Virus record (IMG/VR): IMGVR_UViG_3300044957_000763
Coordinates: 124,001-188,000 of that record
Direction: 5' to 3' (one strand)
DNA: 64,000 nucleotides
Position numbers and translations under genes: made by a program
The notes under the pieces: generated by a model
The model's database searches: none
What the model saw: the letters and a program-made list of their open reading frames with translations, nothing else
What the model was told of the DNA's origin: nothing
Part shown: in pieces, positions 14,937-55,047 of the stretch
How the letters are laid out: the number at the start of each line of letters is the position of its first letter
How positions within the stretch are numbered: position 1 is the first letter of the stretch

Positions 14937-16172
14937 GTCAACTACCACACGCACAAGGCGTGTGGCTTGCTACGAGGGGCTCCGAAGGAGACCTGAGCAA
15001 TAGGGAGATTGACTGCTCCCCTAATTTAGCTATATTTTTGCTGGCGTTAAAGTCAGCGTTCTCTGTATGTCCGCAGGACATACAGAGAAATTTAGCTTGA
15101 CTCTTTCTATTTGCCTTGGCGCAATGTCCGCATTCGCTACACGTCACAGACGTGTAGCGAGCGGGAACAATAGCCAAAGGAACTCCATAGAGCTCAGCTT
15201 TATACGTGATATAGCCTCTGAGTTGGGCGAATGCCCAACTCATTCTCTCGTTTCGATTTTCCTTCCTGACCGTTACTCGCTTGTTGATATGCGTTAGCTC
15301 CTCCAGAGCTAACGCCATTTGAGTGCCTTTGGCTTTCGAAACGATTAGTTTAGAAATGACGTGATTGACGTCTTTTCTAAATCTGGACTCTTTCTGTCCA
15401 GTTGTTTTAATTCTTCTCTTTGCAGAGCGTGTTCCACGCTTCTGCAATCTTTGTTTATGAGAATGATATTGCTTTCGTTTCTTTTCGATGTGTTCTCCAG
15501 AGAACACATCTCCATCTGAAGTAACAGCAATGTTCTTCACTCCCAAGTCCACGCCTATGACGCCTTTGGCGTCATAGGCTGATTCTGTTGGAATATCAAG
15601 AGTGCAGAGCAAGTAGAATTTGTTGTTTTGATATACTAAATCCACTTGTCCTTTTCTGTATTTGAACTTGTCTTTATCGTAGACTTGAATTGGGATTTCC
15701 ATTCTACCATCATTAGTCCAAATATTGACAGTTCCTGAATCCCTAAACGTGATTACTCTGTCATCGTAGACGACAGCAGAAGTTCTTTTGAAGAAATTTC
15801 TCTGATGTCTGTTTCTCTTGACTTTATAGGAGTCGCTTACGACTCCTATAGCTCTTACAACGAGTTGTGAAGAGAAATCTGGCAACGCTTCGCGCTGCTT
15901 TTTGTAAACTATATGATGCAATTGTACTTTTTGATATTCCTTGGCTTCAAATGCTTGACTGGAGATATCATTACAAACATCACTGAAAGTGTGCATCGTG
16001 CGCAATAGCGCACGATGTTGAATCTCGTTGGTATTGAGCCTCGCTTTCAATGTGATATTCATAATAAGGATATTATACAAATAGTGTTTGATGTCCTTAT
16101 TGTTCTTGGAAAATATGCTATAATAGTTGTAGAAGTTCAATTCCTCCCACCCACAAGGGGTGGGGTTTCTTC
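14937..16172 (-). mobile_element. IS200/IS605-family element carrying tnpB only (IS1341-like)
   Basis: Terminal hairpins GTCAACTACCACACGCACAAGGCGTGTGG (14937) and TTCCTCCCACCCACAAGGGGTGGGGTTTC (16141); no tnpA; sits between two intact genes. Confidence 0.75.
14938..16062 (-). CDS. tnpB: RNA-guided endonuclease TnpB
   Basis: RuvC I GVDLG, RuvC II LEEL, zinc finger CSECG...CMSCG, RuvC III NADFNAS; likely start MNITLKARL. Confidence 0.92.
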   Translation of the reverse strand: MNITLKARLNTNEIQHRALLRTMHTFSDVCNDISSQAFEAKEYQKVQLHHIVYKKQREALPDFSSQLVVRAIGVVSDSYKVKRNRHQRNFFKRTSAVVYDDRVITFRDSGTVNIWTNDGRMEIPIQVYDKDKFKYRKGQVDLVYQNNKFYLLCTLDIPTESAYDAKGVIGVDLGVKNIAVTSDGDVFSGEHIEKKRKQYHSHKQRLQKRGTRSAKRRIKTTGQKESRFRKDVNHVISKLIVSKAKGTQMALALEELTHINKRVTVRKENRNERMSWAFAQLRGYITYKAELYGVPLAIVPARYTSVTCSECGHCAKANRKSQAKFLCMSCGHTENADFNASKNIAKLGEQSISLLLRSPSEPLVASHTPCACGS

Positions 16173-16183
16173 TCACAAATACT

Positions 16184-17611
16184 ATGAAAGTCACACATGC
16201 GTCTATACGTCCAACCCTCGCCGCAACGGCATCAGGTCGACCGGCTTTAACCCCAGAACTGTTGGCCTCAGTCGCGGCTAGATATTCACGAAGTGACGAT
16301 GGTCTTGAAGCTATTTTGGGCAAGGTTGACCAGGATAACCCAGACAAGTCGATTGATGCCATTTTTGCGCATGTGGATTACGGACATGCATCTATTGCAG
16401 ATATGGTGCCTGTGGCAATGTTTATGGATGGTGTGTCTGTTTTTCTGGCGTACTATTTATGGACAGAAACTGCTATTGGTGCAGGTCAAGAATCTTCAAC
16501 CAGATACATCAAGATGTCAGTAGATGGCGTCATGCCCTTTGACATGACCGGTTTACCCGAGTCTCAGAACTCTGAGTGGACTTCATTTATCCATACTGCA
16601 TTCGCGTTATACGAAGATGCTTATAATTACTGGCTTGCACTTGCTGAGGAATCACCTGAAATCACACGCATCCCAGAATCATTGTTGAACGACACTAGTG
16701 ATAAAGCACAAAAGCAAGTGGCGAGAATGCAGCGCAATTTTGCCTTTGACCGTGCTCGATATTTTCTGCCGGTCGCCGCACTTACCAATGTAATGATTGT
16801 GCAGTCGGCAAGAGAATGGGCCAGAGTGGCTAATATTTTGAACTCTCATCCGTGTCCAGAGTTCAACATGCTTGGTAAATTGATTGTGGATGAAATGCAA
16901 CTCGTGTGCCCTAGAATGTGTCGACATACAGGTGCAACTGAAGCAACACGTAGAATGCTTTCTAACGAACTAGAGGTCACACGTGCGTTTCGATGCGGAC
17001 TGTCACATAACCACTCGTTGCCAGAGTTTGGGAAAATGCCTGCTGAGAGAGGTTCATCATGCTCTATGCAACCAGAGGCTAATGTAGAGCTTTTTAATGT
17101 AGACAACCCGCTCAACAGCCTAGCATTGTCATCTTCATCACGTGCCAATAGGTACTCTGCATTTGGAAGTTCAGTACGCCGAACTACAGTGCGATTTAGT
17201 TGGGACGCAGTGGCTATGGCCGAGATTCGAGACTTGAACAGGCACAGAACCGGATTCAAATGGTGTCCGCTAAGTCCGCAAGGCTTCTATTGCGCCATGG
17301 ATGAATTACCACCCGATGATGTCGTAAATTTTCAAGCCTTTGAGAGATTTGGATGGAAATTCAGCGTTCGAGCAGCGAATGAACTGTGGAACAGAAGTGT
17401 TGGATATGAGTATTGGACATTGCTGGGTACGCAGTACTACTTTGAACACACCACACAACTTGATAAGTTCATCTACGAAGGAGAATTGCGCACTGGCATT
17501 GGTTCTCATTATCGCTACGCCAGGCACTTGCACGATGCGTTGAATGAACTATATCGAATCGAGCCAGAATTGCGACATCTCATTATGGAAGGAACTGCAG
17601 AGCCTGAGTGA
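16184..17611 (+). CDS. thyX: Flavin-dependent thymidylate synthase, double-domain type
   Basis: YGHASIAD, QESSTRY, DRARYFLP, RDLNRHR. Confidence 0.8.
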   Translation: MKVTHASIRPTLAATASGRPALTPELLASVAARYSRSDDGLEAILGKVDQDNPDKSIDAIFAHVDYGHASIADMVPVAMFMDGVSVFLAYYLWTETAIGAGQESSTRYIKMSVDGVMPFDMTGLPESQNSEWTSFIHTAFALYEDAYNYWLALAEESPEITRIPESLLNDTSDKAQKQVARMQRNFAFDRARYFLPVAALTNVMIVQSAREWARVANILNSHPCPEFNMLGKLIVDEMQLVCPRMCRHTGATEATRRMLSNELEVTRAFRCGLSHNHSLPEFGKMPAERGSSCSMQPEANVELFNVDNPLNSLALSSSSRANRYSAFGSSVRRTTVRFSWDAVAMAEIRDLNRHRTGFKWCPLSPQGFYCAMDELPPDDVVNFQAFERFGWKFSVRAANELWNRSVGYEYWTLLGTQYYFEHTTQLDKFIYEGELRTGIGSHYRYARHLHDALNELYRIEPELRHLIMEGTAEPE

Positions 17612-27487: not shown

Positions 27488-27565
27488 GGGTCTGTAGCTT
27501 AGATGGCTTAAAGCGCGCCTCTCATAAGGGCGAGAGCGTCGGTTCGAATCCGACCAGACCTACCA
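27488..27565 (+). tRNA. tRNA-Met or Ile2 (CAT)
   Basis: GGGTCTG/CAGACCT-ACCA; loop CT-CAT-AA. Confidence 0.88.
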
Positions 27566-27575
27566 AGTTTCTCAT

Positions 27576-27651
27576 GGGGGTGTAGTTTAATTGGGTGAAC
27601 ATTGCTTTCGCACGGCAAAGGTTGTGGGTTCGAGCCCCATCATCTCCACCA
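27576..27651 (+). tRNA. tRNA-Ala(CGC)
   Basis: G3:U70; loop TT-CGC-AC; ACCA. Confidence 0.88.
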
Positions 27652-27654
27652 AGA

Positions 27655-27808
27655 ATTCCTGGTTCTGCAGACTAGGATAAACAAGATGGCGTCGTGGATA
27701 GACACGATTATTCGCCTAGTGCCAACAAGCCTAAAGCGAACTGACAGCAGCGCTCGATTGACAAGAATAAGTCTGAACCAAAGGAATCAAAAACGGTCCT
27801 TGTGGGTA
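27655..27808 (+). ncRNA. Unclassified structured RNA candidate (~150 nt)
   Basis: Nested end pairing ATTCCT..GGTT..CAGACT / AGTCTG..AACC..AGGAAT. Confidence 0.4.
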
Positions 27809-27859
27809 TTCAATCCCACCCATCTTGGAATTTTGTGGTATAATGGAAATAACAGGTTT

Positions 27860-27922
27860 GCGGAACGAAGTCATTGGGTTATCATTAGGAAAAGACACAC
27901 CCACCGACATCAACTTGTCCGC
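27860..27922 (+). ncRNA. Y RNA-like element A (short, no tRNA module)
   Basis: GCGGAACGAAG...GGGTTATC...ACCCA...CTTGTCCGC; parallels the Y RNA Ro60 helix GGUCCGA/CUUGAC. Confidence 0.6.
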
Positions 27923-27936
27923 TTAAAATTTGTGTG

Positions 27937-28081
27937 TTCGGTACGATTGAAATACGGTTATCCTATCATAAAGGGGAAATTCAGGTTCGACTCCTGAGGC
28001 CGGCTCTGTGCTTTCAGCAGAAAGCCGGCTTAGTGTAATGGTTAGCACGCCTAAAAACATCGTTTTCGCCACTTGACCGAA
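27937..28081 (+). ncRNA. YrlA-like element B: permuted tRNA fold with anticodon arm (CAT)
   Basis: Order: anticodon arm, T-arm, acceptor 3' strand GGCCGGC, 18-nt linker, acceptor 5' strand GCCGGCT, D-arm; enclosed by a Y-like stem. Confidence 0.75.
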
Positions 28082-28097
28082 TGTGCAAAACAAATAT

Positions 28098-28318
28098 GGT
28101 GTCCGGGGAGCGGTGAAATTCCGTGGAACGGCTGCGTGGTTGCAAACGCGCAGTGCAGTGGGTGCCTCTGCGAAAGCAAGACCACCCCGGCGAGCCTCAA
28201 ATAGATTTCACGTGGCTGTGTGTAGAACCAGTCGTAGGGTAAAGTGAAACGTTTGTCCATTCGTAAAATGGACTGGAGACGGGTTGCGAGCGGCCCCTCG
28301 GCAATAATGCCGCTCAAC
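28098..28318 (+). ncRNA. Unclassified highly structured RNA (~220 nt)
   Basis: CCGGGG/CCCCGG multiloop with CGG-TGAAATT-CCG T-loop and GAAA hairpin; TTTCAC/GTGAAA domain; three further hairpins. Confidence 0.55.
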
Positions 28319-28328
28319 AGGTTTTAAG

Positions 28329-28403
28329 ATTTGCGGAACGAAGCATCAACGGTTATCACTCACAGCAAATGAACACGACACCGTTAGCGTTCACTTGTCC
28401 GCA
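28329..28403 (+). ncRNA. Y RNA-like element C (short)
   Basis: GCGGAACGAAG...AACGGTTATC...ACCGTT...CTTGTCCGC. Confidence 0.6.
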
Positions 28404-28418
28404 TTCAATTTCTTAAAT

Positions 28419-28566
28419 CTGCGCGGTACGAACGAGTTACGGTTATCCTTCTGTTAAAAGGGTTGCCCAGGTTCGATTCCTGGTCTCGGGACTAAAGACC
28501 ATCTTTAGACTCGAGATAATGTAGTGGTAGCATGCTAAAACATCGTTCTCACCCCTTGACCGCCAG
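28419..28566 (+). ncRNA. YrlA-like element D: permuted tRNA fold with anticodon arm (GTT, Asn)
   Basis: TCCTT-CTGTTAA-AAGGG, CCAGG-TTCGATT-CCTGG, TCTCGGG / 18-nt hairpin linker / CTCGAGA, D-arm ATGT-AGTGGTA-GCAT. Confidence 0.75.
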
Positions 28567-28583
28567 ATTTAAGAACACAGTTT

Positions 28584-28707
28584 CCGGTACGAATGAATAT
28601 TGGTTATCAATTAGTTCGACTCTAATATTCCCCTCTCAGATGTGGTATCATCCACGTTTGAAAGGGGAATCGCCCTGGTGGGCACCCAATTTCAAAACCT
28701 TGACCGG
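28584..28707 (+). ncRNA. YrlA-like element E: T-arm, closed acceptor stem, D-arm (no separate anticodon arm)
   Basis: ATTAG-TTCGACT-CTAAT, ATTCCCC/GGGGAAT joined by a hairpin, enclosed by CCGGTACGAA/CTTGACCGG. Confidence 0.7.
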
Positions 28708-28713
28708 TAAAAT

Positions 28714-28790
28714 CGGGCCGTAGCGTAGCTTGGTATCGCGCCTCGTTTGGGACGAGGAGGTCGCCAGTTCGAATCTGGCCGGCCCGACCA
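28714..28790 (+). tRNA. tRNA-Pro(TGG)
   Basis: CGGGCCG/CGGCCCG-ACCA; loop TT-TGG-GA. Confidence 0.95.
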
Positions 28791-28797
28791 TTTTTTT

Positions 28798-28876
28798 CGA
28801 GCTGTAGCGTAGCTTGGTTTATCGCGCTTACCTGGGAGGTAAGAGGTCGTGGGTTCAAATCCCGCCAGCTCGACCA
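28798..28876 (+). tRNA. tRNA-Pro(GGG)
   Basis: CGAGCTG/CAGCTCG-ACCA; loop CT-GGG-AG. Confidence 0.93.
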
Positions 28877-29200: not shown

Positions 29201-29275
29201 CCACGGATGGTATAGTGGCAATACGCTTGCATTACAAGCAAGAGATTTAGGGTTCGATTCCCTAGCCGTGGACCA
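29201..29275 (+). tRNA. tRNA-Val(TAC)
   Basis: CTTGC-ATTACAA-GCAAG; ACCA. Confidence 0.85.
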
Positions 29276-29282
29276 GGTTTGT

Positions 29283-29358
29283 CCTCAATTAGCTCAGTTG
29301 GTAGAGCGCCTCGTTTACACCGAGGATGCCGGGGGTTCAAGTCCCTCATTGAGGACCA
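29283..29358 (+). tRNA. tRNA-Val(TAC)
   Basis: CCTCAAT/ATTGAGG-ACCA; loop TT-TAC-AC. Confidence 0.92.
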
Positions 29359-32853: not shown

Positions 32854-33339
32854 GTGCTGTACGCTTTATACTTTTTGCTGGTTGTGATTTCTCTGTTATT
32901 GTTTGATAACATTAAATTGCGCAGCCGCATTAGAACTGACGCGATGACTAGCGCAGTAACGCGCACGGTGTTTGAAAGCACACTAGTCCGTTGGCGAAAA
33001 TCCAAGAGTAAGTTCGCTGTTATTTACATTGACTGTGATGGGTTCAAGAGGGTCAATGATGCATATGGACACAAGGCCGGAGACCACGTGTTGTATGCAG
33101 TTGTTGAGTTTTTGAAGGAAATAGTGCGGCCATCTGACATGGTGGCAAGGTTGGGCGGCGACGAATTTGCCATACTTTTGCGCGATTGCAAAAGCGTTCA
33201 ATTGGTGGTCGAGCGTATTCAGGTGTTTAAGTACATTGGTGTGACACTTAGTTGTGGTTGGGCGACTTCTGATGAATATGACCCGCTAACTCTTGCTGAC
33301 ACGCGAATGTATGAGGCTAAACGAGCATCATATCAATAA
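32854..33339 (+). CDS. Diguanylate cyclase (GGDEF) with N-terminal TM helix
   Basis: IDCDGFKRVNDAYGHKAGD, RPSD I-site, RLGGDEF, ADTRMYEAK. Confidence 0.9.
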   Translation: MLYALYFLLVVISLLLFDNIKLRSRIRTDAMTSAVTRTVFESTLVRWRKSKSKFAVIYIDCDGFKRVNDAYGHKAGDHVLYAVVEFLKEIVRPSDMVARLGGDEFAILLRDCKSVQLVVERIQVFKYIGVTLSCGWATSDEYDPLTLADTRMYEAKRASYQ

Positions 33340-33727: not shown

Positions 33728-33803
33728 GCTCCAGTAGCTCAACGACAGAGCGGAGGTCTCTAACACCTCGACTGAGTGGGTTCAACTCCCACCTGGAGCA
33801 CCA
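33728..33803 (+). tRNA. Amber-suppressor-type tRNA (CTA)
   Basis: GCTCCAG/CTGGAGC-ACCA; GAGGT-CT-CTA-AC-ACCTC; own TGCTATAAT promoter. Confidence 0.88.
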
Positions 33804-33808
33804 AATTT

Positions 33809-34288
33809 ATGCAAGTATTCGTACCATCAACTGATATGCGCGAAAGCGTTAGAGTGTTAGATACTCTAAGATTGCGAAAGCAATTGTTAGAGTGCGTGGG
33901 GATTTTGTCGATTCTTCACAATCTTCCAAAGGCAGACGGCTCTCCGCGCAAAGGGCATCTCAATCATCCAGCAGTGCTTCAATGGAAATACTGGCCTGGT
34001 TGCTTGGCGACGTATGCCATGATGTGCGTGGAAGAACTTGAATCTCGTGGATTTTTCTCGGAAAAGATGCGTACTTCTGCCGAGGCATTTCAGACCGATG
34101 ACAACAAACCAGTTTGGTGGGGTGATGAGCAAGTTCATTCAACACATCGAAGTCGACTGCTACAAAAAGACCCTGTACACTACGGTCAATTCAATTGGGA
34201 AGAGATGAATCAAGAACCGCAGTCATATTGGTGGGCTATTCCATCGAGTAAATCTGAGTACAACTTGGAGCGCAGAGGTAAATCATGA
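33809..34288 (+). CDS. Pyrimidine-dimer glycosylase/endonuclease V-like (MSMEG_6728 family)
   Basis: MQVF...LDTLRLRKQLLE...HLNHPAVLQW...HSTHRSRLLQKDP. Confidence 0.8.
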   Translation: MQVFVPSTDMRESVRVLDTLRLRKQLLECVGILSILHNLPKADGSPRKGHLNHPAVLQWKYWPGCLATYAMMCVEELESRGFFSEKMRTSAEAFQTDDNKPVWWGDEQVHSTHRSRLLQKDPVHYGQFNWEEMNQEPQSYWWAIPSSKSEYNLERRGKS

Positions 34289-34761
34289 GGTTCATTTTCT
34301 TGGATATTGATGGTTGTCTGAATGACCGCACAATGATGTCAAATGGATTTTGTGGTATTGATGACGATAAAGTTGCGTTATTGAATCAAATTCTCTCGAA
34401 TCACGAGGATGTGTTCTTGGTGATTTCTTCTGCATGGCGATATATGTGCATAGCTAAAGATATGACTCTAAGAGGGTTTGAGGAAATGTTGTTGACCCAC
34501 GGTGTAGACTGCTACGGTCGTGTCCATGGTATTACATCTCCAGATGAGAAATATTGGCCAGACATTCCAACAAGTGACGATTATGCAGACCTTACTGTTC
34601 GCGCTCGTCAAATTGAAGAATATGTACAACAACATAACCCACAATCATTTGTGGTATTTGATGATTTGGATTTACCAGTTGACAATATAGTCAAGACTGA
34701 TGGTCAAATTGGCTTAGAGCAACACCACATATACTCAGCTCTGAACATTTTATTTCAGTAG
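34285..34761 (+). CDS. HAD-superfamily (Swiss Army Knife RNA repair-like) protein
   Basis: FLDIDGCLN, ISSAWR, VVFDD. Confidence 0.8.
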   Translation: MRFIFLDIDGCLNDRTMMSNGFCGIDDDKVALLNQILSNHEDVFLVISSAWRYMCIAKDMTLRGFEEMLLTHGVDCYGRVHGITSPDEKYWPDIPTSDDYADLTVRARQIEEYVQQHNPQSFVVFDDLDLPVDNIVKTDGQIGLEQHHIYSALNILFQ

Positions 34762-38577: not shown

Positions 38578-41500
38578 ATGTGGTACAGAACTATTGTAGC
38601 TGCAAGAAACGGCGTATATGTTTCAGAATTGAATTTACCAATCAATGAAACACTGCACGCAATTCTTGAGGATTTGAGGTCACAAGGATTTAAGGCCTTG
38701 GTGGTCGGCGGTGCTGTGCGAGACGCGGTGATGGGTGTGGTGCCCAAAGACATTGATGTTGAGGTTTATGGAGCAGACTATGACACTTTACACACAACAC
38801 TCACCAAATACGGTCGCGCCGACGTAGTTGGTAAAAGTTTTGGTGTGTTGAAGTTGCGCACGCCCGATGGTCAAGATTATGACTTTAGCGTTCCTCGGCG
38901 TGACAGTAAAACAGGAGATGGGCATACAGGGTTTAAAATTACTGTAGACCATACAATGACACCAGAGCAAGCGGCAGCCCGCCGCGATTTCACCATGAAT
39001 TGTTTTTCTGGAGAAACGAAAATATTGACCAAATCAGGACCGAAATCATTAATGGAATTATGTGGTCAACAATGTGAGGTGTTAGACGGAAACGGTGAGT
39101 GGACACACGCAGATGTTAGGTCGTTTGGTGTTCAAAAATTGTTAAAATTGACTGTTACCAGAAATAGAATTGTCAAAACGATTTATGCAACTCCAAATCA
39201 CAGATGGTTTATCAAGAATAAACACACATATGTTTTTGACCGCGAAAGAACGACTGAGAATTTGCGGTGCGGTCACATGCTTCCGTCTGTGTATCCAATT
39301 ATTCAATCTACACAATTAGACAATGAGTCTATTTGTAGGGGGTTTGTATTTGGTGACGGCAACATTGTTGTTTTTGACAGCGGGAATGCGGTGAGCATTG
39401 CTAATTTTTGCGGTGAAAAAGACTCACATTTATTACCTTTATTTGAAAAACTGGACATGGGTCGACCCCCTCATGATATCCCATCGGGCAAGCGCATCTC
39501 TTCTCTTCCGCCAAATTGGAAGTTAGAAACTCCAGAATTTTCTGAATCATATGAATATCTACTTGGGTGGTTGTCTGGTTATTTTGCCGCTGATGGTTGT
39601 GTAGACTCTAAGGGATGTCCTGTGTTGAGTTCTTGCAATAGGGAAAATCTTGAATATGTAGAGCAACTTTGCAGATGTGTTGGTATCGGTACATATCAAA
39701 TCAGTCAATGTAAAATTGGTTCTGGGTACAATTCAAAAAGTGAATGTTGGTCTTTGGGCTTTGTGCGCAAAACTTTGTTTTCTGATTTTTTTATTATTCC
39801 AGAGCACAGAAAAAGATTTAACTCTGCAACCAATAGTCGGAATCGAACTGCATGGAAGGTTGTTAGTGTTGATGATTCAGATAGGATTGAAGAGGTTTAT
39901 TGTGCTGTAGTGCCGACCACTCATACATTTTGCCTAGATGGCAATTTGTTGACATCAAATTGTCTTGCGTATGACCCGTTGACGTCTGAGATACATGACT
40001 ACTATGGTGGAATTGAGGACTTGGAGAACGGTGTGTTGCGCGCCACCACAGAGGCATTTAAGGAAGACCCTTTGCGTGTATTGCGCGGCATGCAATTCGC
40101 TGCCAGATACGGTATGCGTCTAGACCCTGACACTGCAAAGATGTGCAGGGAAATAGTCGATGCGCATGACGAGTTGGCAACTGAGCGCATTGCAGAAGAA
40201 TGGATGAAACTTGCCATTAAGGGAAAACAACCAGGAACCGCACTCGAATACTTGGCAGACACTGGATGGCTAAAGCATTATCCAGAGCTTGAGGCCATGT
40301 TCGATGTGCCCCAAGACCCAGAATGGCACCCGGAAGGCTGGGAGCACTTCGATGCACCAGAACACAAAAGAAACCTATATACCAAAGAAGACCAAAATGT
40401 ATCTCACTGGCAAGACGTTATTGGTTTTCGGGGCGACGCACCAAGCGGTAGTAAAATGGTCTCGACACCTTATAAGTCCACAAATCCAGAACGCCAGCAT
40501 GAGAACAGCCCAGAACCACACATTTATGTCACTATGGATGTTCCTATTGACAGCTATTGGAGATATGTGTACGAACAAGACAGAATTGATGCCAAACCTA
40601 TAGCCAACCTTGCTGTTAGACACTTAATGTCTCAATATGGTGGTGCCGAACTTAATGGCAAGACCCACTATCGTATGATTGGTTCATTGAAAGCCAGTCC
40701 AGCAGTGTATTGTCATGCCGAACGACAAGGTGACCATGTTGAATTGACCGTTGGGCTTCATAGTGAGTTGTCTAAGGAGTTGTTAGACCGTGGATGCCCA
40801 CTTCATGTTTATGTGAAAATGGGCGATGTAGCCACGCATACTGCACACGTGATGGATGCAGCCGCTGCAGTTGCAGAGCGAGACGGACTGATTGGTGATG
40901 ACAGGGCAACATTAGTACTTGCCGCTATGGTGCATGATATTGCCAAGCCACAGACCACAGAAATCCAGCAACGCGCCGGCAGGGGTATGTCTGTAACTTC
41001 GATTGGTCACGAAAAGGCCGGAGAACCAATTGCTGTAGACCTACTCAAAAGAATGGGCATTAAGAAGTCAATCAGGGATAAGGTTGGTCCAATGGTGGCA
41101 CGTCATTTGGCGCATGTTACCACGACCCCAACTAAGTCTAATGTGCGCAAGCTGGCTCGTGATATCGCACCAGCCAGCATTGAAGAACTTGCCAAGTTGA
41201 TTGAGGCCGACCATTCTGGTAGGCCACCATTGCCACAAGAGTTACCTCGTCAAGCCCAGGATATGTTGGATATTGCTAGAAAAGACGGTGTAGCCAACGG
41301 CAAGCCCGCACCAATTGTGCAAGGCAAGCATGTTCTGCCATATTACGGTGGCGCGTCAGGGAAACATATTGGTGAAGCGGTACAGGAAGCATATCGTGCA
41401 TACTTAAATGGTGCCTATGACAACTTTGAAGGTGGACAACAGTGGTTGAGCAATTATTTACAGTCTCGAGCCTCTATGCTTAGAGGTTCAGATGTTATAG

Positions 41501-41646
41501 CACTTGGTGTTAAACCCGGTCCAGTGATTGGTCAAATACTCAACGAGGCATGGCAAATGCAGATTGTGGGCACGTTCACGAGTCGTGAGGATGCTCTTGC
41601 TTGGCTGTCGAATCGAGTGAATTCTGACGCCACGTTAACGCAGTAG
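38578..41646 (+). CDS. cca: CCA-adding tRNA nucleotidyltransferase with HD domain, intein and extra insertion
   Basis: VGGAVRD, DIDVE, RRDFTMN, EDPLRVLR, ERIAEEW, PQDPEWHPEG, VHDIAK. Confidence 0.9.
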   Translation: MWYRTIVAARNGVYVSELNLPINETLHAILEDLRSQGFKALVVGGAVRDAVMGVVPKDIDVEVYGADYDTLHTTLTKYGRADVVGKSFGVLKLRTPDGQDYDFSVPRRDSKTGDGHTGFKITVDHTMTPEQAAARRDFTMNCFSGETKILTKSGPKSLMELCGQQCEVLDGNGEWTHADVRSFGVQKLLKLTVTRNRIVKTIYATPNHRWFIKNKHTYVFDRERTTENLRCGHMLPSVYPIIQSTQLDNESICRGFVFGDGNIVVFDSGNAVSIANFCGEKDSHLLPLFEKLDMGRPPHDIPSGKRISSLPPNWKLETPEFSESYEYLLGWLSGYFAADGCVDSKGCPVLSSCNRENLEYVEQLCRCVGIGTYQISQCKIGSGYNSKSECWSLGFVRKTLFSDFFIIPEHRKRFNSATNSRNRTAWKVVSVDDSDRIEEVYCAVVPTTHTFCLDGNLLTSNCLAYDPLTSEIHDYYGGIEDLENGVLRATTEAFKEDPLRVLRGMQFAARYGMRLDPDTAKMCREIVDAHDELATERIAEEWMKLAIKGKQPGTALEYLADTGWLKHYPELEAMFDVPQDPEWHPEGWEHFDAPEHKRNLYTKEDQNVSHWQDVIGFRGDAPSGSKMVSTPYKSTNPERQHENSPEPHIYVTMDVPIDSYWRYVYEQDRIDAKPIANLAVRHLMSQYGGAELNGKTHYRMIGSLKASPAVYCHAERQGDHVELTVGLHSELSKELLDRGCPLHVYVKMGDVATHTAHVMDAAAAVAERDGLIGDDRATLVLAAMVHDIAKPQTTEIQQRAGRGMSVTSIGHEKAGEPIAVDLLKRMGIKKSIRDKVGPMVARHLAHVTTTPTKSNVRKLARDIAPASIEELAKLIEADHSGRPPLPQELPRQAQDMLDIARKDGVANGKPAPIVQGKHVLPYYGGASGKHIGEAVQEAYRAYLNGAYDNFEGGQQWLSNYLQSRASMLRGSDVIALGVKPGPVIGQILNEAWQMQIVGTFTSREDALAWLSNRVNSDATLTQ
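39001..39960 (+). mobile_element. Intein (320 aa) with LAGLIDADG homing endonuclease
   Basis: Begins CFSGET, block B TPNHRW, GFVFGDG and GYFAADG, ends VYCAVV...LLTSN; +1 residue Cys. Confidence 0.92.
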
Positions 41647-43802: not shown

Positions 43803-43879
43803 CCGTCGCTAGCTCAATGGTTAGTAGCAATTCCCTCTTAAGGAAAAGGTTCTGGGTTCAAGTCCCAGGCGACGGACCA
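43803..43879 (+). tRNA. tRNA-Lys(CTT)
   Basis: CCGTCGC/GCGACGG-ACCA; loop CT-CTT-AA. Confidence 0.88.
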
Positions 43880-43883
43880 ATAC

Positions 43884-43955
43884 CCCTCCGTGGCGCAAAG
43901 GCAGCGCAGGTGACTTTTAATTACTTGGTTACAGGTTCGAATCCTGTCGGGGGGA
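43884..43955 (+). tRNA. tRNA-Lys(TTT), no encoded CCA
   Basis: CCCTCCG/CGGGGGG-A; loop CT-TTT-AA. Confidence 0.85.
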
Positions 43956-43963
43956 CACAATTT

Positions 43964-44042
43964 GGCGGCTTAACTCAGTTGGGTCAAGAGTACTCGGCTT
44001 TTAACCGAGGGGTCGTGGGGTCCCAGTCCACAGTCGCCACCA
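43964..44042 (+). tRNA. tRNA-Lys(TTT), atypical T-loop
   Basis: GGCGGCT/AGTCGCC-ACCA; CTCGG-CTTTTAA-CCGAG; T-loop lacks TTC. Confidence 0.75.
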
Positions 44043-45007: not shown

Positions 45008-46267
45008 ATGAACTATCTTAGAACTGTTTTTGCATCCGATATGCCCTTTGCGGCAGATAGAGAACTTGGAAACCAAGTCCTTTGTGGGCGAATTACCAAC
45101 GTGCGTAGGCAAGGTGGTGTTTGTTTCATTACAATCCAAGACCACACTGGCAGAACTCAACTATTCGGCCAGCGCAATGTACTTGGTGACCGATATACCG
45201 ACTTCTATCAAATGGGTGTTGGTGACATGGTGTATGCGCTTGGAAACATTGCACGCACTGTAGCCGGCGAACCAAGTCTGTTTGTATCTGACTTTGGAAT
45301 TGGTGGTGTTGCATATGACCGACCACCTCTAGGTCAGGTTACTCCAGACGGTGTTCGGATGAATGCTCTTGAGGACATTGAAGAGTGTCGAAGAAATCGA
45401 CATTTGGATATGATGTCGAATAGCGACACAATGTCGCGATTCGTGTCGCGTTCGCAGTTTATTAGCGACTTGCGTGCCTATCTTCGCGACATGGCCTATT
45501 TAGAAGTCGAGACACCAATTTTGCAAGAACAGGCCACTGGTGCCACTGCGTCTACGTTCAATACGTATCACAACGAAATGAACCAGGATATGCAGTTGCG
45601 AATCGCTCTTGAGATTCACCTCAAGCTATGCATTATGGGTGGATTAGACAGGGTATTTGAACTTGGTCGGGTTTTCAGAAACGAAGGTGTTAGTTCGCGT
45701 CACAATCCAGAGTTTACATTGTTAGAGATGTACGCTGCGTGGACTGGACTTGAGCACATGATGTCAGAAACTGAGCATATCGTCCGAATGGCATATGCTT
45801 CATTTGGCCGTGAATTGCCAGAATTCAGAGTTGCTACAATGGGCTCTCTGGTTGGTGATTCAGAAAATTTGATTGAAGATTTTGACAATCATATTGCACA
45901 CACGTTAGTTGAGCCGACGTTTGTTACAAATCATCCACTAAGCGATTCGCCTTTTGCTCAAGAGGACATTGCAATGCCTGGTACGGCTATGAGGTTTGAA
46001 CTCTATATCAATGGTGTAGAAGTTGCGAATGCCTATCAGGAAATCAATGATGCCGAAGAACAGGCTTCTCGTTTGAGATTGGATGATGGAACATTGGCAC
46101 CAATGGATGCGTATTTTGTCAACGCAATGCGAAATGGCATGCCGCCGACAAGCGGCCTCGGGATTGGTATTGACAGGCTAGTTATGCTTGCATCCAATTC
46201 TGCATCAATTCGTGACATCTTGTTGTTCCCGTCGATGAGAAATACAGGAGGGATTCCTATGTTGTAG
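45008..46267 (+). CDS. lysS: Compact class II lysyl-tRNA synthetase
   Basis: N-terminal OB fold; YLEVETP, LRIALEIHLK, motif 2 FRNEG..RHNPEFT.LEMY, motif 3 GMPPTSGLGIGIDRLVM. Confidence 0.9.
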   Translation: MNYLRTVFASDMPFAADRELGNQVLCGRITNVRRQGGVCFITIQDHTGRTQLFGQRNVLGDRYTDFYQMGVGDMVYALGNIARTVAGEPSLFVSDFGIGGVAYDRPPLGQVTPDGVRMNALEDIEECRRNRHLDMMSNSDTMSRFVSRSQFISDLRAYLRDMAYLEVETPILQEQATGATASTFNTYHNEMNQDMQLRIALEIHLKLCIMGGLDRVFELGRVFRNEGVSSRHNPEFTLLEMYAAWTGLEHMMSETEHIVRMAYASFGRELPEFRVATMGSLVGDSENLIEDFDNHIAHTLVEPTFVTNHPLSDSPFAQEDIAMPGTAMRFELYINGVEVANAYQEINDAEEQASRLRLDDGTLAPMDAYFVNAMRNGMPPTSGLGIGIDRLVMLASNSASIRDILLFPSMRNTGGIPML

Positions 46268-54218: not shown

Positions 54219-54530
54219 ATGAGATTGGTGAAAGAAAACATTTTAACACCTGAGCAAATAGAGAAAATAACCGAGGCTTTCGTCCATGGTCGCGCTTCGC
54301 AGGGAGAACCTGCACCTACAGATTCAGAACTCGAGTCCATTCTGTGGTGGTTTAATGAAGTCGCTCGAGGCGCAGTACTAATGCAGTGGGTTTTAGACGG
54401 TTCAATTGCGTTGAATATGAATGATAATATCATAGTATTTATTGGTATGGAACAAGACGAAGACACACTATCACCTCTCATTATGAAGCAATTAGAGTCA
54501 CTTGATTTTGATGGAGAAAATCAGGTATAA
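54219..54530 (+). CDS. Hypothetical protein
   Basis: Likely start MRLVKENIL. Confidence 0.5.
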   Translation: MRLVKENILTPEQIEKITEAFVHGRASQGEPAPTDSELESILWWFNEVARGAVLMQWVLDGSIALNMNDNIIVFIGMEQDEDTLSPLIMKQLESLDFDGENQV

Positions 54531-54537
54531 GTCCAAT

Positions 54538-55047
54538 ATGGATGTTATTATTCGTGCAAAATCCGATGACCACTTGCCAGAAAAAACCAAACAGGTCATT
54601 GTTGTGCGCAAACTATACCCGGATGGTAAGGGTGGTCTGCGTAAAATCAGGTCTGGCAAAATAGCATCCCAAGCCGCGCACGCTAGTATGATTTGGTTAT
54701 CAAGGCGGGTTTGTGAGGCTGCATCACCGCCGCTTGAGCATATTGTTGGAAAGATGAGCGCATACCCAGGTGTTAAGTACACAAACAATTTTAACGACCT
54801 TGGGTTTACCACCGAAGAGCGCGATTGGCTAACTGGAAAATTCACCAAGATTGTGCTTGGAGTTGACACAGAAGAAGAACTGATTGCCTTGCATCAAAAA
54901 GCACTAGACGCCGGTCTTACATCTCATATTGTAACTGATTCTGGTCTTACAGAATTTGACGGAGAACCAACCAACACTGCGATTGCCATTGGCCCCCATA
55001 GTGCCAATAGAATTGAAGGATTAACCAAGGGGCTTAGTTTACTATGA
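54538..55047 (+). CDS. Peptidyl-tRNA hydrolase, Pth2 family
   Basis: KQVIVVRK...GKIASQAAHAS...KIVL...DSGLTEF...TAIAIGP. Confidence 0.9.
   Translation: MDVIIRAKSDDHLPEKTKQVIVVRKLYPDGKGGLRKIRSGKIASQAAHASMIWLSRRVCEAASPPLEHIVGKMSAYPGVKYTNNFNDLGFTTEERDWLTGKFTKIVLGVDTEEELIALHQKALDAGLTSHIVTDSGLTEFDGEPTNTAIAIGPHSANRIEGLTKGLSLL

Follow-up and report, generated by a model that had tools for sequence, protein, structure and literature searches.

In a 64,000-nucleotide stretch of viral DNA (hereafter the window), which is part of the 478,840-bp IMG/VR contig IMGVR_UViG_3300044957_000763 from a megaphage of ~479 kb, we identified five Y RNA genes. These elements, A to E, lie at 27861–28706 on the plus strand, inside a plus-strand array that comprises 26 tRNA genes and one for tmRNA. 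They are new members of a known family, and neither tRNA genes nor a new class of RNA. Judged by sequence, A and C are the short form of Y RNA, E has the standard YrlA form, and B and D have the YrlA form that bears an additional hairpin. We consider it likely that all five are Y RNAs of the Ro60 protein and that the tRNA-shaped body enclosed by B and D acts as a mimic, an effector or decoy, and not as a decoding tRNA.

All five elements have a 5' strand CGGWACGA, the motif GGTTATC and a 3' strand CTTGWCCG, placed as follows (in the order A, B, C, D, E):

CGG[AT]ACGA, plus strand, starts at 27861, 27939, 28334, 28424 and 28585
GGTTATC, plus strand, starts at 27877, 27956, 28351, 28441 and 28602
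CTTG[AT]CCG, plus strand, ends at 27921, 28079, 28401, 28562 and 28706

The pattern ACGA-N6-14-GGTTATC occurs five times in the window against 0.17 expected, and none of 100 shuffles reached five. In every element the outer strands pair into a closing helix, GGWACGA/CUUGWCC with a bulged C, and UUAUC comes next. This is the bulged end helix of Ro60-type Y RNAs, except that one conserved C-G pair is A.G in all five. GGTTATC likewise provides, in five of five elements, the YUAY that marks the start of the variable region in YrlA. Minimum-free-energy folding recovered the closing stem in all five and cloverleaf arms inside B, D and E. T arm, acceptor and D arm are all that E has; B and D add an anticodon-like hairpin in front of the T arm and have a long hairpin as acceptor. 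Fold z-scores were −2.4 for B, −3.0 for D and −6.2 for E, with weaker values for the short elements (A −1.8, C −1.0). The parts of the elements are these:

27861–27921, plus strand: element A, a short Y RNA (closing stem, GGGTTATC, ~20-nucleotide (nt) loop)
27939–28079, plus strand: element B, a YrlA-class Y RNA around a complete permuted tRNA body, anticodon CAU
27962–27976, plus strand: anticodon arm of B, the part in the 5' segment, with CCT (29–31), loop ATCATAA (27965–27971) and AGGGG (39–43)
27981–28005, plus strand: T arm of B (27981–27997), then the acceptor 3' strand GGCCGGC and discriminator T (27998–28005)
28006–28023, plus strand: linker hairpin of B, 18 nt, after the discriminator and closing the acceptor stem
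28024–28051, plus strand: acceptor 5' strand of B, GCCGGCT, then U8 A9, D arm GTGT-AATGGTTA-GCAC, G26, C27 and C28
28334–28401, plus strand: element C, a short Y RNA, paralogue of A
28424–28562, plus strand: element D, a YrlA-class Y RNA around a complete permuted tRNA body, anticodon GUU
28447–28462, plus strand: anticodon arm of D, the part in the 5' segment, with CCTT (28–31), loop CTGTTAA (28451–28457) and AAGGG (39–43)
28467–28491, plus strand: T arm of D (28467–28483), then the acceptor 3' strand TCTCGGG and discriminator A (28484–28491)
28492–28509, plus strand: linker hairpin of D, 18 nt, CTAAAG-ACCAT-CTTTAG, then A
28510–28535, plus strand: acceptor 5' strand of D, CTCGAGA, then U8 A9, D arm ATGT-AGTGGTA-GCAT, G26 and C27
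28585–28706, plus strand: element E, a standard YrlA, whose closing stem continues the anticodon stem (TTGG/CCAA), with TTATC as variable loop

B, D and E have the tRNA-like parts in the order characteristic of YrlA, with T arm, closed acceptor and D arm succeeding one another within the stem. E consists of a T arm (28610–28626), an acceptor (28627–28633 with 28664–28670) extended by a hairpin (28634–28663), and a D arm (28672–28683). The anticodon of B, CAT, lies at 27967–27969, and its stem is completed by C27 and C28 at 28050–28051; that of D, GTT, lies at 28453–28455, with C27 at 28535 completing the stem. Put back into tRNA order, B (28024–28051 joined to 27962–28005, so that GCACGCC runs into CCTATCAT) was called tRNA-Met(cat) by ARAGORN, and D (28510–28535 joined to 28447–28491, with GCATGC running into CCTTCTGTT) was called tRNA-Asn(gtt). 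Both are complete cloverleaves, with stems of 7 bp (acceptor), 4 bp (D), 5 bp (anticodon) and 5 bp (T). Much of this anatomy had been proposed in an earlier note made from the sequence alone. The five elements carry the motifs it listed at the coordinates it gave, B and D enclose the complete permuted tRNAs it described and have the 18-nt linkers it saw in both, and E is the standard YrlA-type permuted tRNA mimic it took it for.

Four metagenome contigs (L310, L312, L314 and L315) carry the array at 94–95% identity, compared with 82–86% for the flanking genes; L-numbers, such as L152 or L314, denote viral metagenome loci throughout. C is identical in all four contigs, and the anticodon arm of B is invariant. 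The B linker keeps its hairpin despite changed letters (CUGU/GCAG in the window, CUGC/GCAG in L314), and the D linker keeps its stem with a loop that differs among the relatives. In the acceptor of D, pair 3-70 changes from C-G to U-A and pair 2-71 from U.G to C-G. The anticodon of D is GUU in L312, where the discriminator is G, and GUC (loop CTGTCAA) in L310, L314 and L315, on a body that is almost unchanged. E is present in L314 and L315 and absent from L310 and L312. The conservation and the compensatory changes together speak for a selected, structured RNA.

More distant homologues came from a scan of IMG/VR with a pattern built from RNA features only (GGTTATC, a T loop, then CTTGWCC). It returned about a dozen true homologues amid chance matches, with the 5' strand GG(N)CCGA. 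An earlier viral pattern, ACGA..GGTTATC..CTTGWCCG, had the source contig alone among its true matches, and blastn of the region against INPHARED phages gave 0 matches. Ten Ro60-linked homologous elements from viral contigs then served as the seed of a covariance model, R1, which scores B at 96.4 bits and D at 92, and with filters off A at 30.2, E at 29.6 and C at 25.7. Across these 10 homologues compensatory changes affect 25 of 32 consensus pairs; the outer helix covaries at its fourth pair (U-A, A-U, G-U, G-C) and the second helix covaries too, so that the covariation the earlier note reported for both helices holds in the wider set.

The homologues adjoin Ro60 genes. All seven open reading frames of ~530–660 amino acids beside them encode Ro60 (TROVE plus vWA_Ro60), and tblastn placed Ro60 at three further homologue loci, which makes 10 of the 10 loci with enough flank and bears out the Y-RNA-like, Ro60-type character that the earlier note had assigned. 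Applied to viral Ro60 loci, R1 found arrays of two to five elements at dozens of loci, mostly within ~700 nt of Ro60; IMG/VR contains at least 467 Ro60 loci, typically with 2–5 Y RNAs each. Short elements built like A adjoin Ro60 in L166, L139, mycobacteriophage ET08 and Gordonia phage BearBQ. The T arm of E is identical to that of an element adjoining a Ro60 gene (L158:9944–10049), and one Ro60-adjacent element (L162/L304) has a GGUACGA strand like those of the window. The seed relatives of R1 score 35–41 bits against the Rfam YrlA model RF02553, whose gathering score is 69, and the two elements adjoining the Rsr gene of Rhizobium etli score 63.5 and 92.2 bits. On the strength of transitive homology and of Ro60-linked relatives, A–E are best filed as Ro60-associated Y RNAs; that they bind Ro60 is something we assume, because their helix carries A where the canonical one has C.

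Several observations weigh against this assignment, beginning with that A, which replaces the canonical Ro60-helix C in all five elements. Rfam, at gathering thresholds and at E ≤ 10, returned no YrlA or Y_RNA match in the window; B, D and E did not match RF02553 even at E ≤ 10 and fell short of its 69-bit threshold. Only A matched a family, RF01656 (34.4 bits, E = 4.9e-5, below the gathering score of 38), which we take to belong to the nematode stem-bulge RNAs, homologues of Y RNAs. Of the match to Rfam Y RNA families that the earlier note had looked to, this sub-threshold similarity is what stood; the YrlA and Y_RNA part did not. The near-invariant stems of YrlA (D, GCUC/GAGC; T, GCGGG/CCCGC) are absent from the window elements: B has GUGU/GCAC (D) and UCAGG/CCUGA (T), and element D has AUGU/GCAU and CCAGG/CCUGG. 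The sub-group with a GUGU/GCAC D stem also includes L127:1496, L263 and L278. In the 64-kb window we found no Ro60 gene (best tblastn E 0.028), which agrees with the earlier note, as does the absence of a tRNA-Asn gene. The source contig is also absent from the best 80 loci listed in each of three Ro60 scans, queried with an alignment of 7 sequences, with a megaphage alignment and with a Ro60 of the L162 type; 80 was the number listed in every scan of viral contigs. A 2056-amino-acid open reading frame puts the window at roughly 122–190 kb of that contig. The Ro60 partner of the window elements would come from the host or from another part of the phage genome. A 416-kb phage (L147/L209) also has Y elements in its tRNA array, away from its own Ro60 gene.

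The hairpin that distinguishes B and D from E occupies the position of the 'V' stem-loop of Chen et al. 2014 (PMC4201824). It is also present in ET08, in BearBQ, on a plasmid of R. etli (beside the Rsr gene), on a Picosynechococcus plasmid, and in 38 of the 61 viral elements readable by our parser. The alignment of seven YrlA sequences in that paper (PMC4201824) includes the one from ET08. Three Y elements lie upstream of the Ro gene of this phage and the middle one bears the hairpin, reading GGTTAC at the end of the closing strand, then CTC-ATTGAAA-GAGAG-AGGTC and the T arm, and later the D arm, G and CT, with TAAAC following. The earlier note had presented B and D as a special, new type of YrlA, allowing that novelty would be lost if known YrlAs already had anticodon-arm members. 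Because the known YrlAs include such hairpin members, that part of its claim falls. What may be new is the reading of the hairpin itself as an anticodon arm. The YrlA papers of 2014 (PMC4201824) and 2018 (bioRxiv 10.1101/312249) treat the hairpin as a variable arm and describe YrlA as being without an anticodon loop.

Comparative data favour the anticodon-arm reading of this hairpin over the variable-arm reading. We parsed the 61 viral elements automatically and retained 38 distinct ones with the hairpin, chosen for complete stems. In all 38, exactly five pairs are formed by the bases after position 26 together with those 5' of the loop. The 5-bp stem is split between the two segments as 1+4, 2+3, 3+2 or 4+1, one to four bases following the D arm, and the partner strand precedes a variable loop of 4–5 nt, often AGGUC. 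Pair 27-43 is C-G in 27 elements, G-C in 6, U-A in 4 and A-U in 1; pair 28-42, where nucleotide 28 lies in the 3' segment, is C-G in 11, G-C in 6, U-A in 5 and U-G in 1. Since the set had been pre-selected for complete stems, the informative number comes from a control with swapped 3' segments, in which 16.6 ± 2.2 of the 38 stems stay complete. The 37 loops of seven nt have U33 in 33 cases, a purine at 37 in 33 and A38 in 34, and ARAGORN called a tRNA for 41 of 42 hairpin elements after permutation. Read as a variable arm, the hairpin would leave four and six unpaired bases at its two connections to the tRNA core. These patterns suggest that the hairpin of YrlA is a true anticodon arm. With its split 5-bp stem, 7-nt loop and succeeding 4–5-nt variable loop, it behaves as the earlier note had argued for B and D.

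YrlA (RF02553; PMC4201824; bioRxiv 10.1101/312249) resembles the window elements in its closing stem with CGA(A) near the 5' end, its YUAY/UUAUC, its T arm 5' of the D arm with a closed acceptor between them, and its occurrence in phages and next to tRNA genes. Its optional fourth stem-loop ('V') upstream of the T arm is in the position of the B and D hairpin, and the elements of ET08, BearBQ and R. etli have a layout identical to that of B and D. The window elements differ in their diverged D and T stems, in GGWACGA instead of GG(N)CCGA, and in their location within a tRNA array with no Ro60 gene closer than 27 kb, whereas YrlA usually lies within 4 kb of one on the same strand. The YrlA of Mycobacterium smegmatis has, like B and D, a 7-bp acceptor stem with a linker; two-piece processing was seen there and is proposed here by analogy. 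A scan of genome contigs with a 19-mer from the M. smegmatis YrlA primers gave only a chance match, in a metagenome-assembled genome of Solirubrobacterales. A and C share with known short Y RNAs (YrlB, metazoan Y RNAs, nematode stem-bulge RF01656) a bulged closing helix, UUAUC at the border of stem and loop, and a small loop; the motifs of human Y1 RNA, 5' GGUCCGA...GUUAUC and 3' CUUGAC, are near-identical to theirs. They differ from these RNAs in being phage-encoded, in having A.G for C-G and in falling short of the Rfam gathering scores. Two-piece tmRNA made from permuted ssrA genes sets a bacterial and phage precedent for cutting a permuted, tRNA-like domain into two base-paired pieces; it differs from B and D in having neither an anticodon arm nor a Ro60 helix and in working on ribosomes. 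ARAGORN flags a permuted tmRNA in L145.

Other architectures turned up among the viral elements. At L166:8037–8169 (= L121:10187–10319) a Y-type closing stem surrounds a tRNA-like body whose parts keep the unpermuted order (called tRNA-Ile gat by ARAGORN; 46.9 bits to the Rfam tRNA model), and this is one of four distinct Y RNA architectures in a row downstream of a single Ro60 gene. In L200:5623–5816 and L288:8564–8798 the motifs of another Y element appear in the acceptor-closing linker of a hairpin-type Y RNA (GGGCCGAAG as 5' strand, GTTATC and CACTTGCCC as 3' strand in L200; GGTTATC in L288), as though one Y RNA were nested inside another.

We propose that A–E are probably transcribed together with the phage tRNA array and that the ends of each element would pair into the bulged Ro60-binding helix, in a lineage variant with A.G for the canonical C-G. 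A and C would resemble YrlB or stem-bulge RNAs, and in E the closing stem would take the place of the anticodon stem of the permuted body. In B and D the anticodon arm and variable loop are predicted to come first, followed by the T arm, the acceptor 3' strand, the linker, the acceptor 5' strand and finally the D arm; the anticodon stem would be nicked in its 5' strand, where the Ro60 stem leaves, between nucleotides 28 and 29 in B and between 27 and 28 in D. Ro60, from elsewhere in the phage or from the host, would bind the closing stem, and the tRNA-shaped body would engage tRNA-recognising factors. B and D have features compatible with processing, namely the 7-bp acceptor stem, a discriminator and the hairpin linker. 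The YrlA of M. smegmatis undergoes RNase P cleavage and, in vivo, CCA addition, and its two pieces remain bound to Rsr (PMC4201824); by this precedent, RNase P would likely cut B at G28024 and D at C28510, and after trimming CCA would be added, leaving RNAs of two pieces joined through their acceptor and Ro60 stems. In 5 of 42 relatives N73-CCA is already encoded where the linker begins, against ~0.7 expected. A possible trans-acting partner of B and D is encoded in the window:

38578–41646, plus strand: CCA-adding/repair enzyme gene (domains: nucleotidyltransferase head, RNA-binding and HD), split by a LAGLIDADG intein

Its product matches PolyA_pol, PolyA_pol_RNAbd, HD, LAGLIDADG_3 and Intein_splicing in Pfam and a multifunctional CCA addition/repair protein in NCBIfam (E 1.9e-44). 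Published work on a Thermus phage has suggested that phage Ro60 and Y RNAs recruit the host PNPase.

B and D might instead be precursor genes of functional circularly permuted tRNAs, for Met or Ile2 and for Asn. Loss of the closing stem, ligation of nucleotides 27 and 28 (for example by an RtcB-type enzyme) and opening of the acceptor through RNase P and 3' trimming would then yield decoding tRNAs as in Cyanidioschyzon merolae. Once permuted, B and D are indeed textbook cloverleaves, the window is without an ordinary tRNA-Asn and encodes a CCA-adding enzyme, and element D of L312 pairs GUU with a G73 discriminator, which is the Asn discriminator of E. coli. Wang et al. 2018 (bioRxiv 10.1101/312249) also raised the possibility that some YrlAs are processed toward a likeness to canonical tRNAs. 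The permuted tRNA genes of C. merolae and Thermofilum resemble B and D in placing the 3' half first, in closing the acceptor with a linker and in having termini that pair; they are reported to use a bulge-helix-bulge and a splicing endonuclease to yield decoding tRNAs (Soma 2007; Chan 2011). In B and D, by contrast, the anticodon stem is broken in its 5' strand and the termini form a Ro60-type helix. Their junction (GGUU-AU/C and C/UAAA-AAC, slashes marking the break), judged by eye with no formal test, shows no bulge-helix-bulge and reads like a three-way junction with AU and UAAA linkers. According to the literature, bacteria have no reported splicing-type endonuclease, and we found neither RtcB nor an endonuclease candidate within the 64-kb window. 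Among the relatives, acceptors are closed by UUCG, GAAA or GCAA (L166, L158, L180, L192, L234, L290), the Ser anticodons GCU and UGA occur on class I bodies that have no long variable arm, the GUU element of L152 is accompanied by a normal tRNA-Asn, and D switches between GUU and GUC at 94–95% identity. The discriminators U73 of B and A73 of D are presumably unfit for Met and Asn identity. The evidence leans against B and D as precursors of decoding tRNAs, a fate that we judge very improbable; the tetraloop-closed acceptors of the relatives and the GUU/GUC variation of D argue for tRNA mimics.

If B and D are mimics, their anticodon loops could still be the working part. They would then be two-piece, CCA-tailed and possibly aminoacylated look-alikes that serve, on Ro60, as anticodon-specific decoys or sensors for tRNA-cleaving defence nucleases, or as baits for anticodon-loop modification enzymes. 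Certain loops recur on unrelated anticodon and acceptor stems: UUUGGGA four times (Pro UGG with G37, which real tRNA-Pro also has), CUUGUAA three times and CUGCUAA three times. A GUU class comprises D of the window, L152, L290, R. etli and Picosynechococcus, and a single phage often has several elements with different anticodons. Thirty pairs of elements share an anticodon triplet, against 18.0 ± 3.9 in column-preserving shuffles (45 of 5000 reach 30), a result of modest strength (p about 0.009) that ignores the kinship of the elements; pairs with the same anticodon are no closer in their acceptor stems (identity 0.30 vs 0.36 overall). This recurrence hints that anticodon identity matters, which a generic mimic leaves unexplained. 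The window also encodes an RNA-repair-type HAD_SAK_2 domain and a PTH2 peptidyl-tRNA hydrolase beside the CCA-adding/repair enzyme. We identified no nuclease or other partner, however; the conserved neighbours of viral Ro60 genes are replication and recombination genes, among which we found no RNA-repair partner and no functional clue, and the GUU/GUC switch could be neutral drift. An anticodon-specific function of this kind seems to us unlikely on balance. The closing stems could also be processing or stability signals of a tRNA operon, with B and D as decaying tandem-tRNA duplicates that have no function of their own. That would suit 64 kb without Ro60 and the A.G mismatch at a conserved pair of the helix, and R1 matches ordinary tRNA dimers of the array at 15–34 bits, so such an arrangement arises easily. 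Against it, all five paralogues keep both helix strands and UUAUC, the array is conserved above its neighbouring genes with compensatory changes, the homologues are linked to Ro60 at every locus with enough flank, and the L147/L209 phage likewise has its Y elements in a tRNA array; we give this explanation scarcely any weight. Our preferred reading is still that A–E are Ro60 Y RNAs and that B and D carry tRNA mimics.

The matches to tRNA dimers involve R1 positions 26–104 and lie at 29226–29311, 28741–28830, 27516–27600 and other places in the window; they run from the T arm and acceptor 3' strand of one tRNA across the spacer into the acceptor 5' strand and D arm of its successor. They fit the published model in which YrlA originated from a dimeric tRNA, and the suggestion of the earlier note that B and D are intermediates between tRNA and Y RNA agrees with the same model. 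At L319:4631–4756 and at L320:2669–2775 and 2801–2923, the Rfam tRNA model spans two consecutive YrlA elements, taking the 5' half of a tRNA from one and the 3' half from the next, so that tandem Y RNAs are read as tRNAs with very large inserts.

Two non-coding features accompany the elements, and further features of interest lie elsewhere in the window:

27838–27846, plus strand: extended −10 promoter-like site TGGTATAAT, ~13 nt upstream of A, with no good −35
28086–28330, plus strand: conserved, non-coding spacer between B and C, a candidate further RNA
14938–16362, minus strand: TnpB/Cas12f-like gene
32854–33339: stand-alone GGDEF domain
34285–34761: HAD domain of the 'Swiss army knife' RNA-repair type (HAD_SAK_2)
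54502–55047: PTH2 peptidyl-tRNA hydrolase

The TGGTATAAT site is invariant in the four related contigs and may be the promoter of the array; it went unscored in a consensus promoter scan because its −35 is poor. The 207-nt spacer upstream of A (27652–27858), which ends in TGGTATAAT, is ~95% conserved, above the neighbouring genes; it matched no Rfam family and its fold z-score is unremarkable (−1.78). The B–C spacer is 94% identical in the relatives (L312:8178–8580), which have 162 extra nt at its start, and its hairpin GUCCAUUCGUAAAAUGGAC shows a compensatory change from A-U to U-A. It too matched no Rfam family and has an unremarkable fold z-score (−0.66); it may be another RNA. A class II aminoacyl-tRNA synthetase at 45008–46267 (419 amino acids, N-terminally short) was considered as an AsnRS for D and set aside, as it is LysRS-like and lies directly downstream of three tRNA-Lys genes; the intervals of this feature are 45008–46267 and 43803–44041. 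A tRNA with a CUA anticodon (amber suppressor; ARAGORN label 'Pyl') is encoded at 33728–33803; recoding of TAG in the window is unsupported, with TAG ending 16 of 54 long frames. The relative L312 has a tRNA with a UCA anticodon at 1882–1958.

For the window, the practical result is annotation of A–E as Y RNA genes, which adds a divergent five-gene Y RNA array within a megaphage tRNA cluster. The role of the tRNA-like half of bacterial Y RNAs has been a standing question since 2014, and the anticodon-arm comparison is worth specialist attention: it suggests that hairpin-bearing YrlAs are very common beside viral Ro60 genes, and particular anticodon loops recur on unrelated bodies. A tentative generalization, to which we give perhaps a small chance, is that most phage and many bacterial YrlAs are whole permuted tRNAs with a selected anticodon arm and a Ro60 stem at nucleotides 27–30, look-alikes displayed by Ro60. 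If this is true, the anticodon classes would be Pro-UGG with G37, Thr-UGU, Ser-GCU, Gly-GCC, Lys-UUU, Asn-GUU and CAU, and Ro60 would display species-specific tRNA look-alikes as decoys or sensors for anticodon nucleases or as baits for anticodon-loop enzymes. RNase P would open the members that have a linker, B and D among them, and the phage enzyme would supply their CCA. Should the anticodon-arm picture hold, it would give direct support to the origin of Y RNAs from tandem tRNAs.

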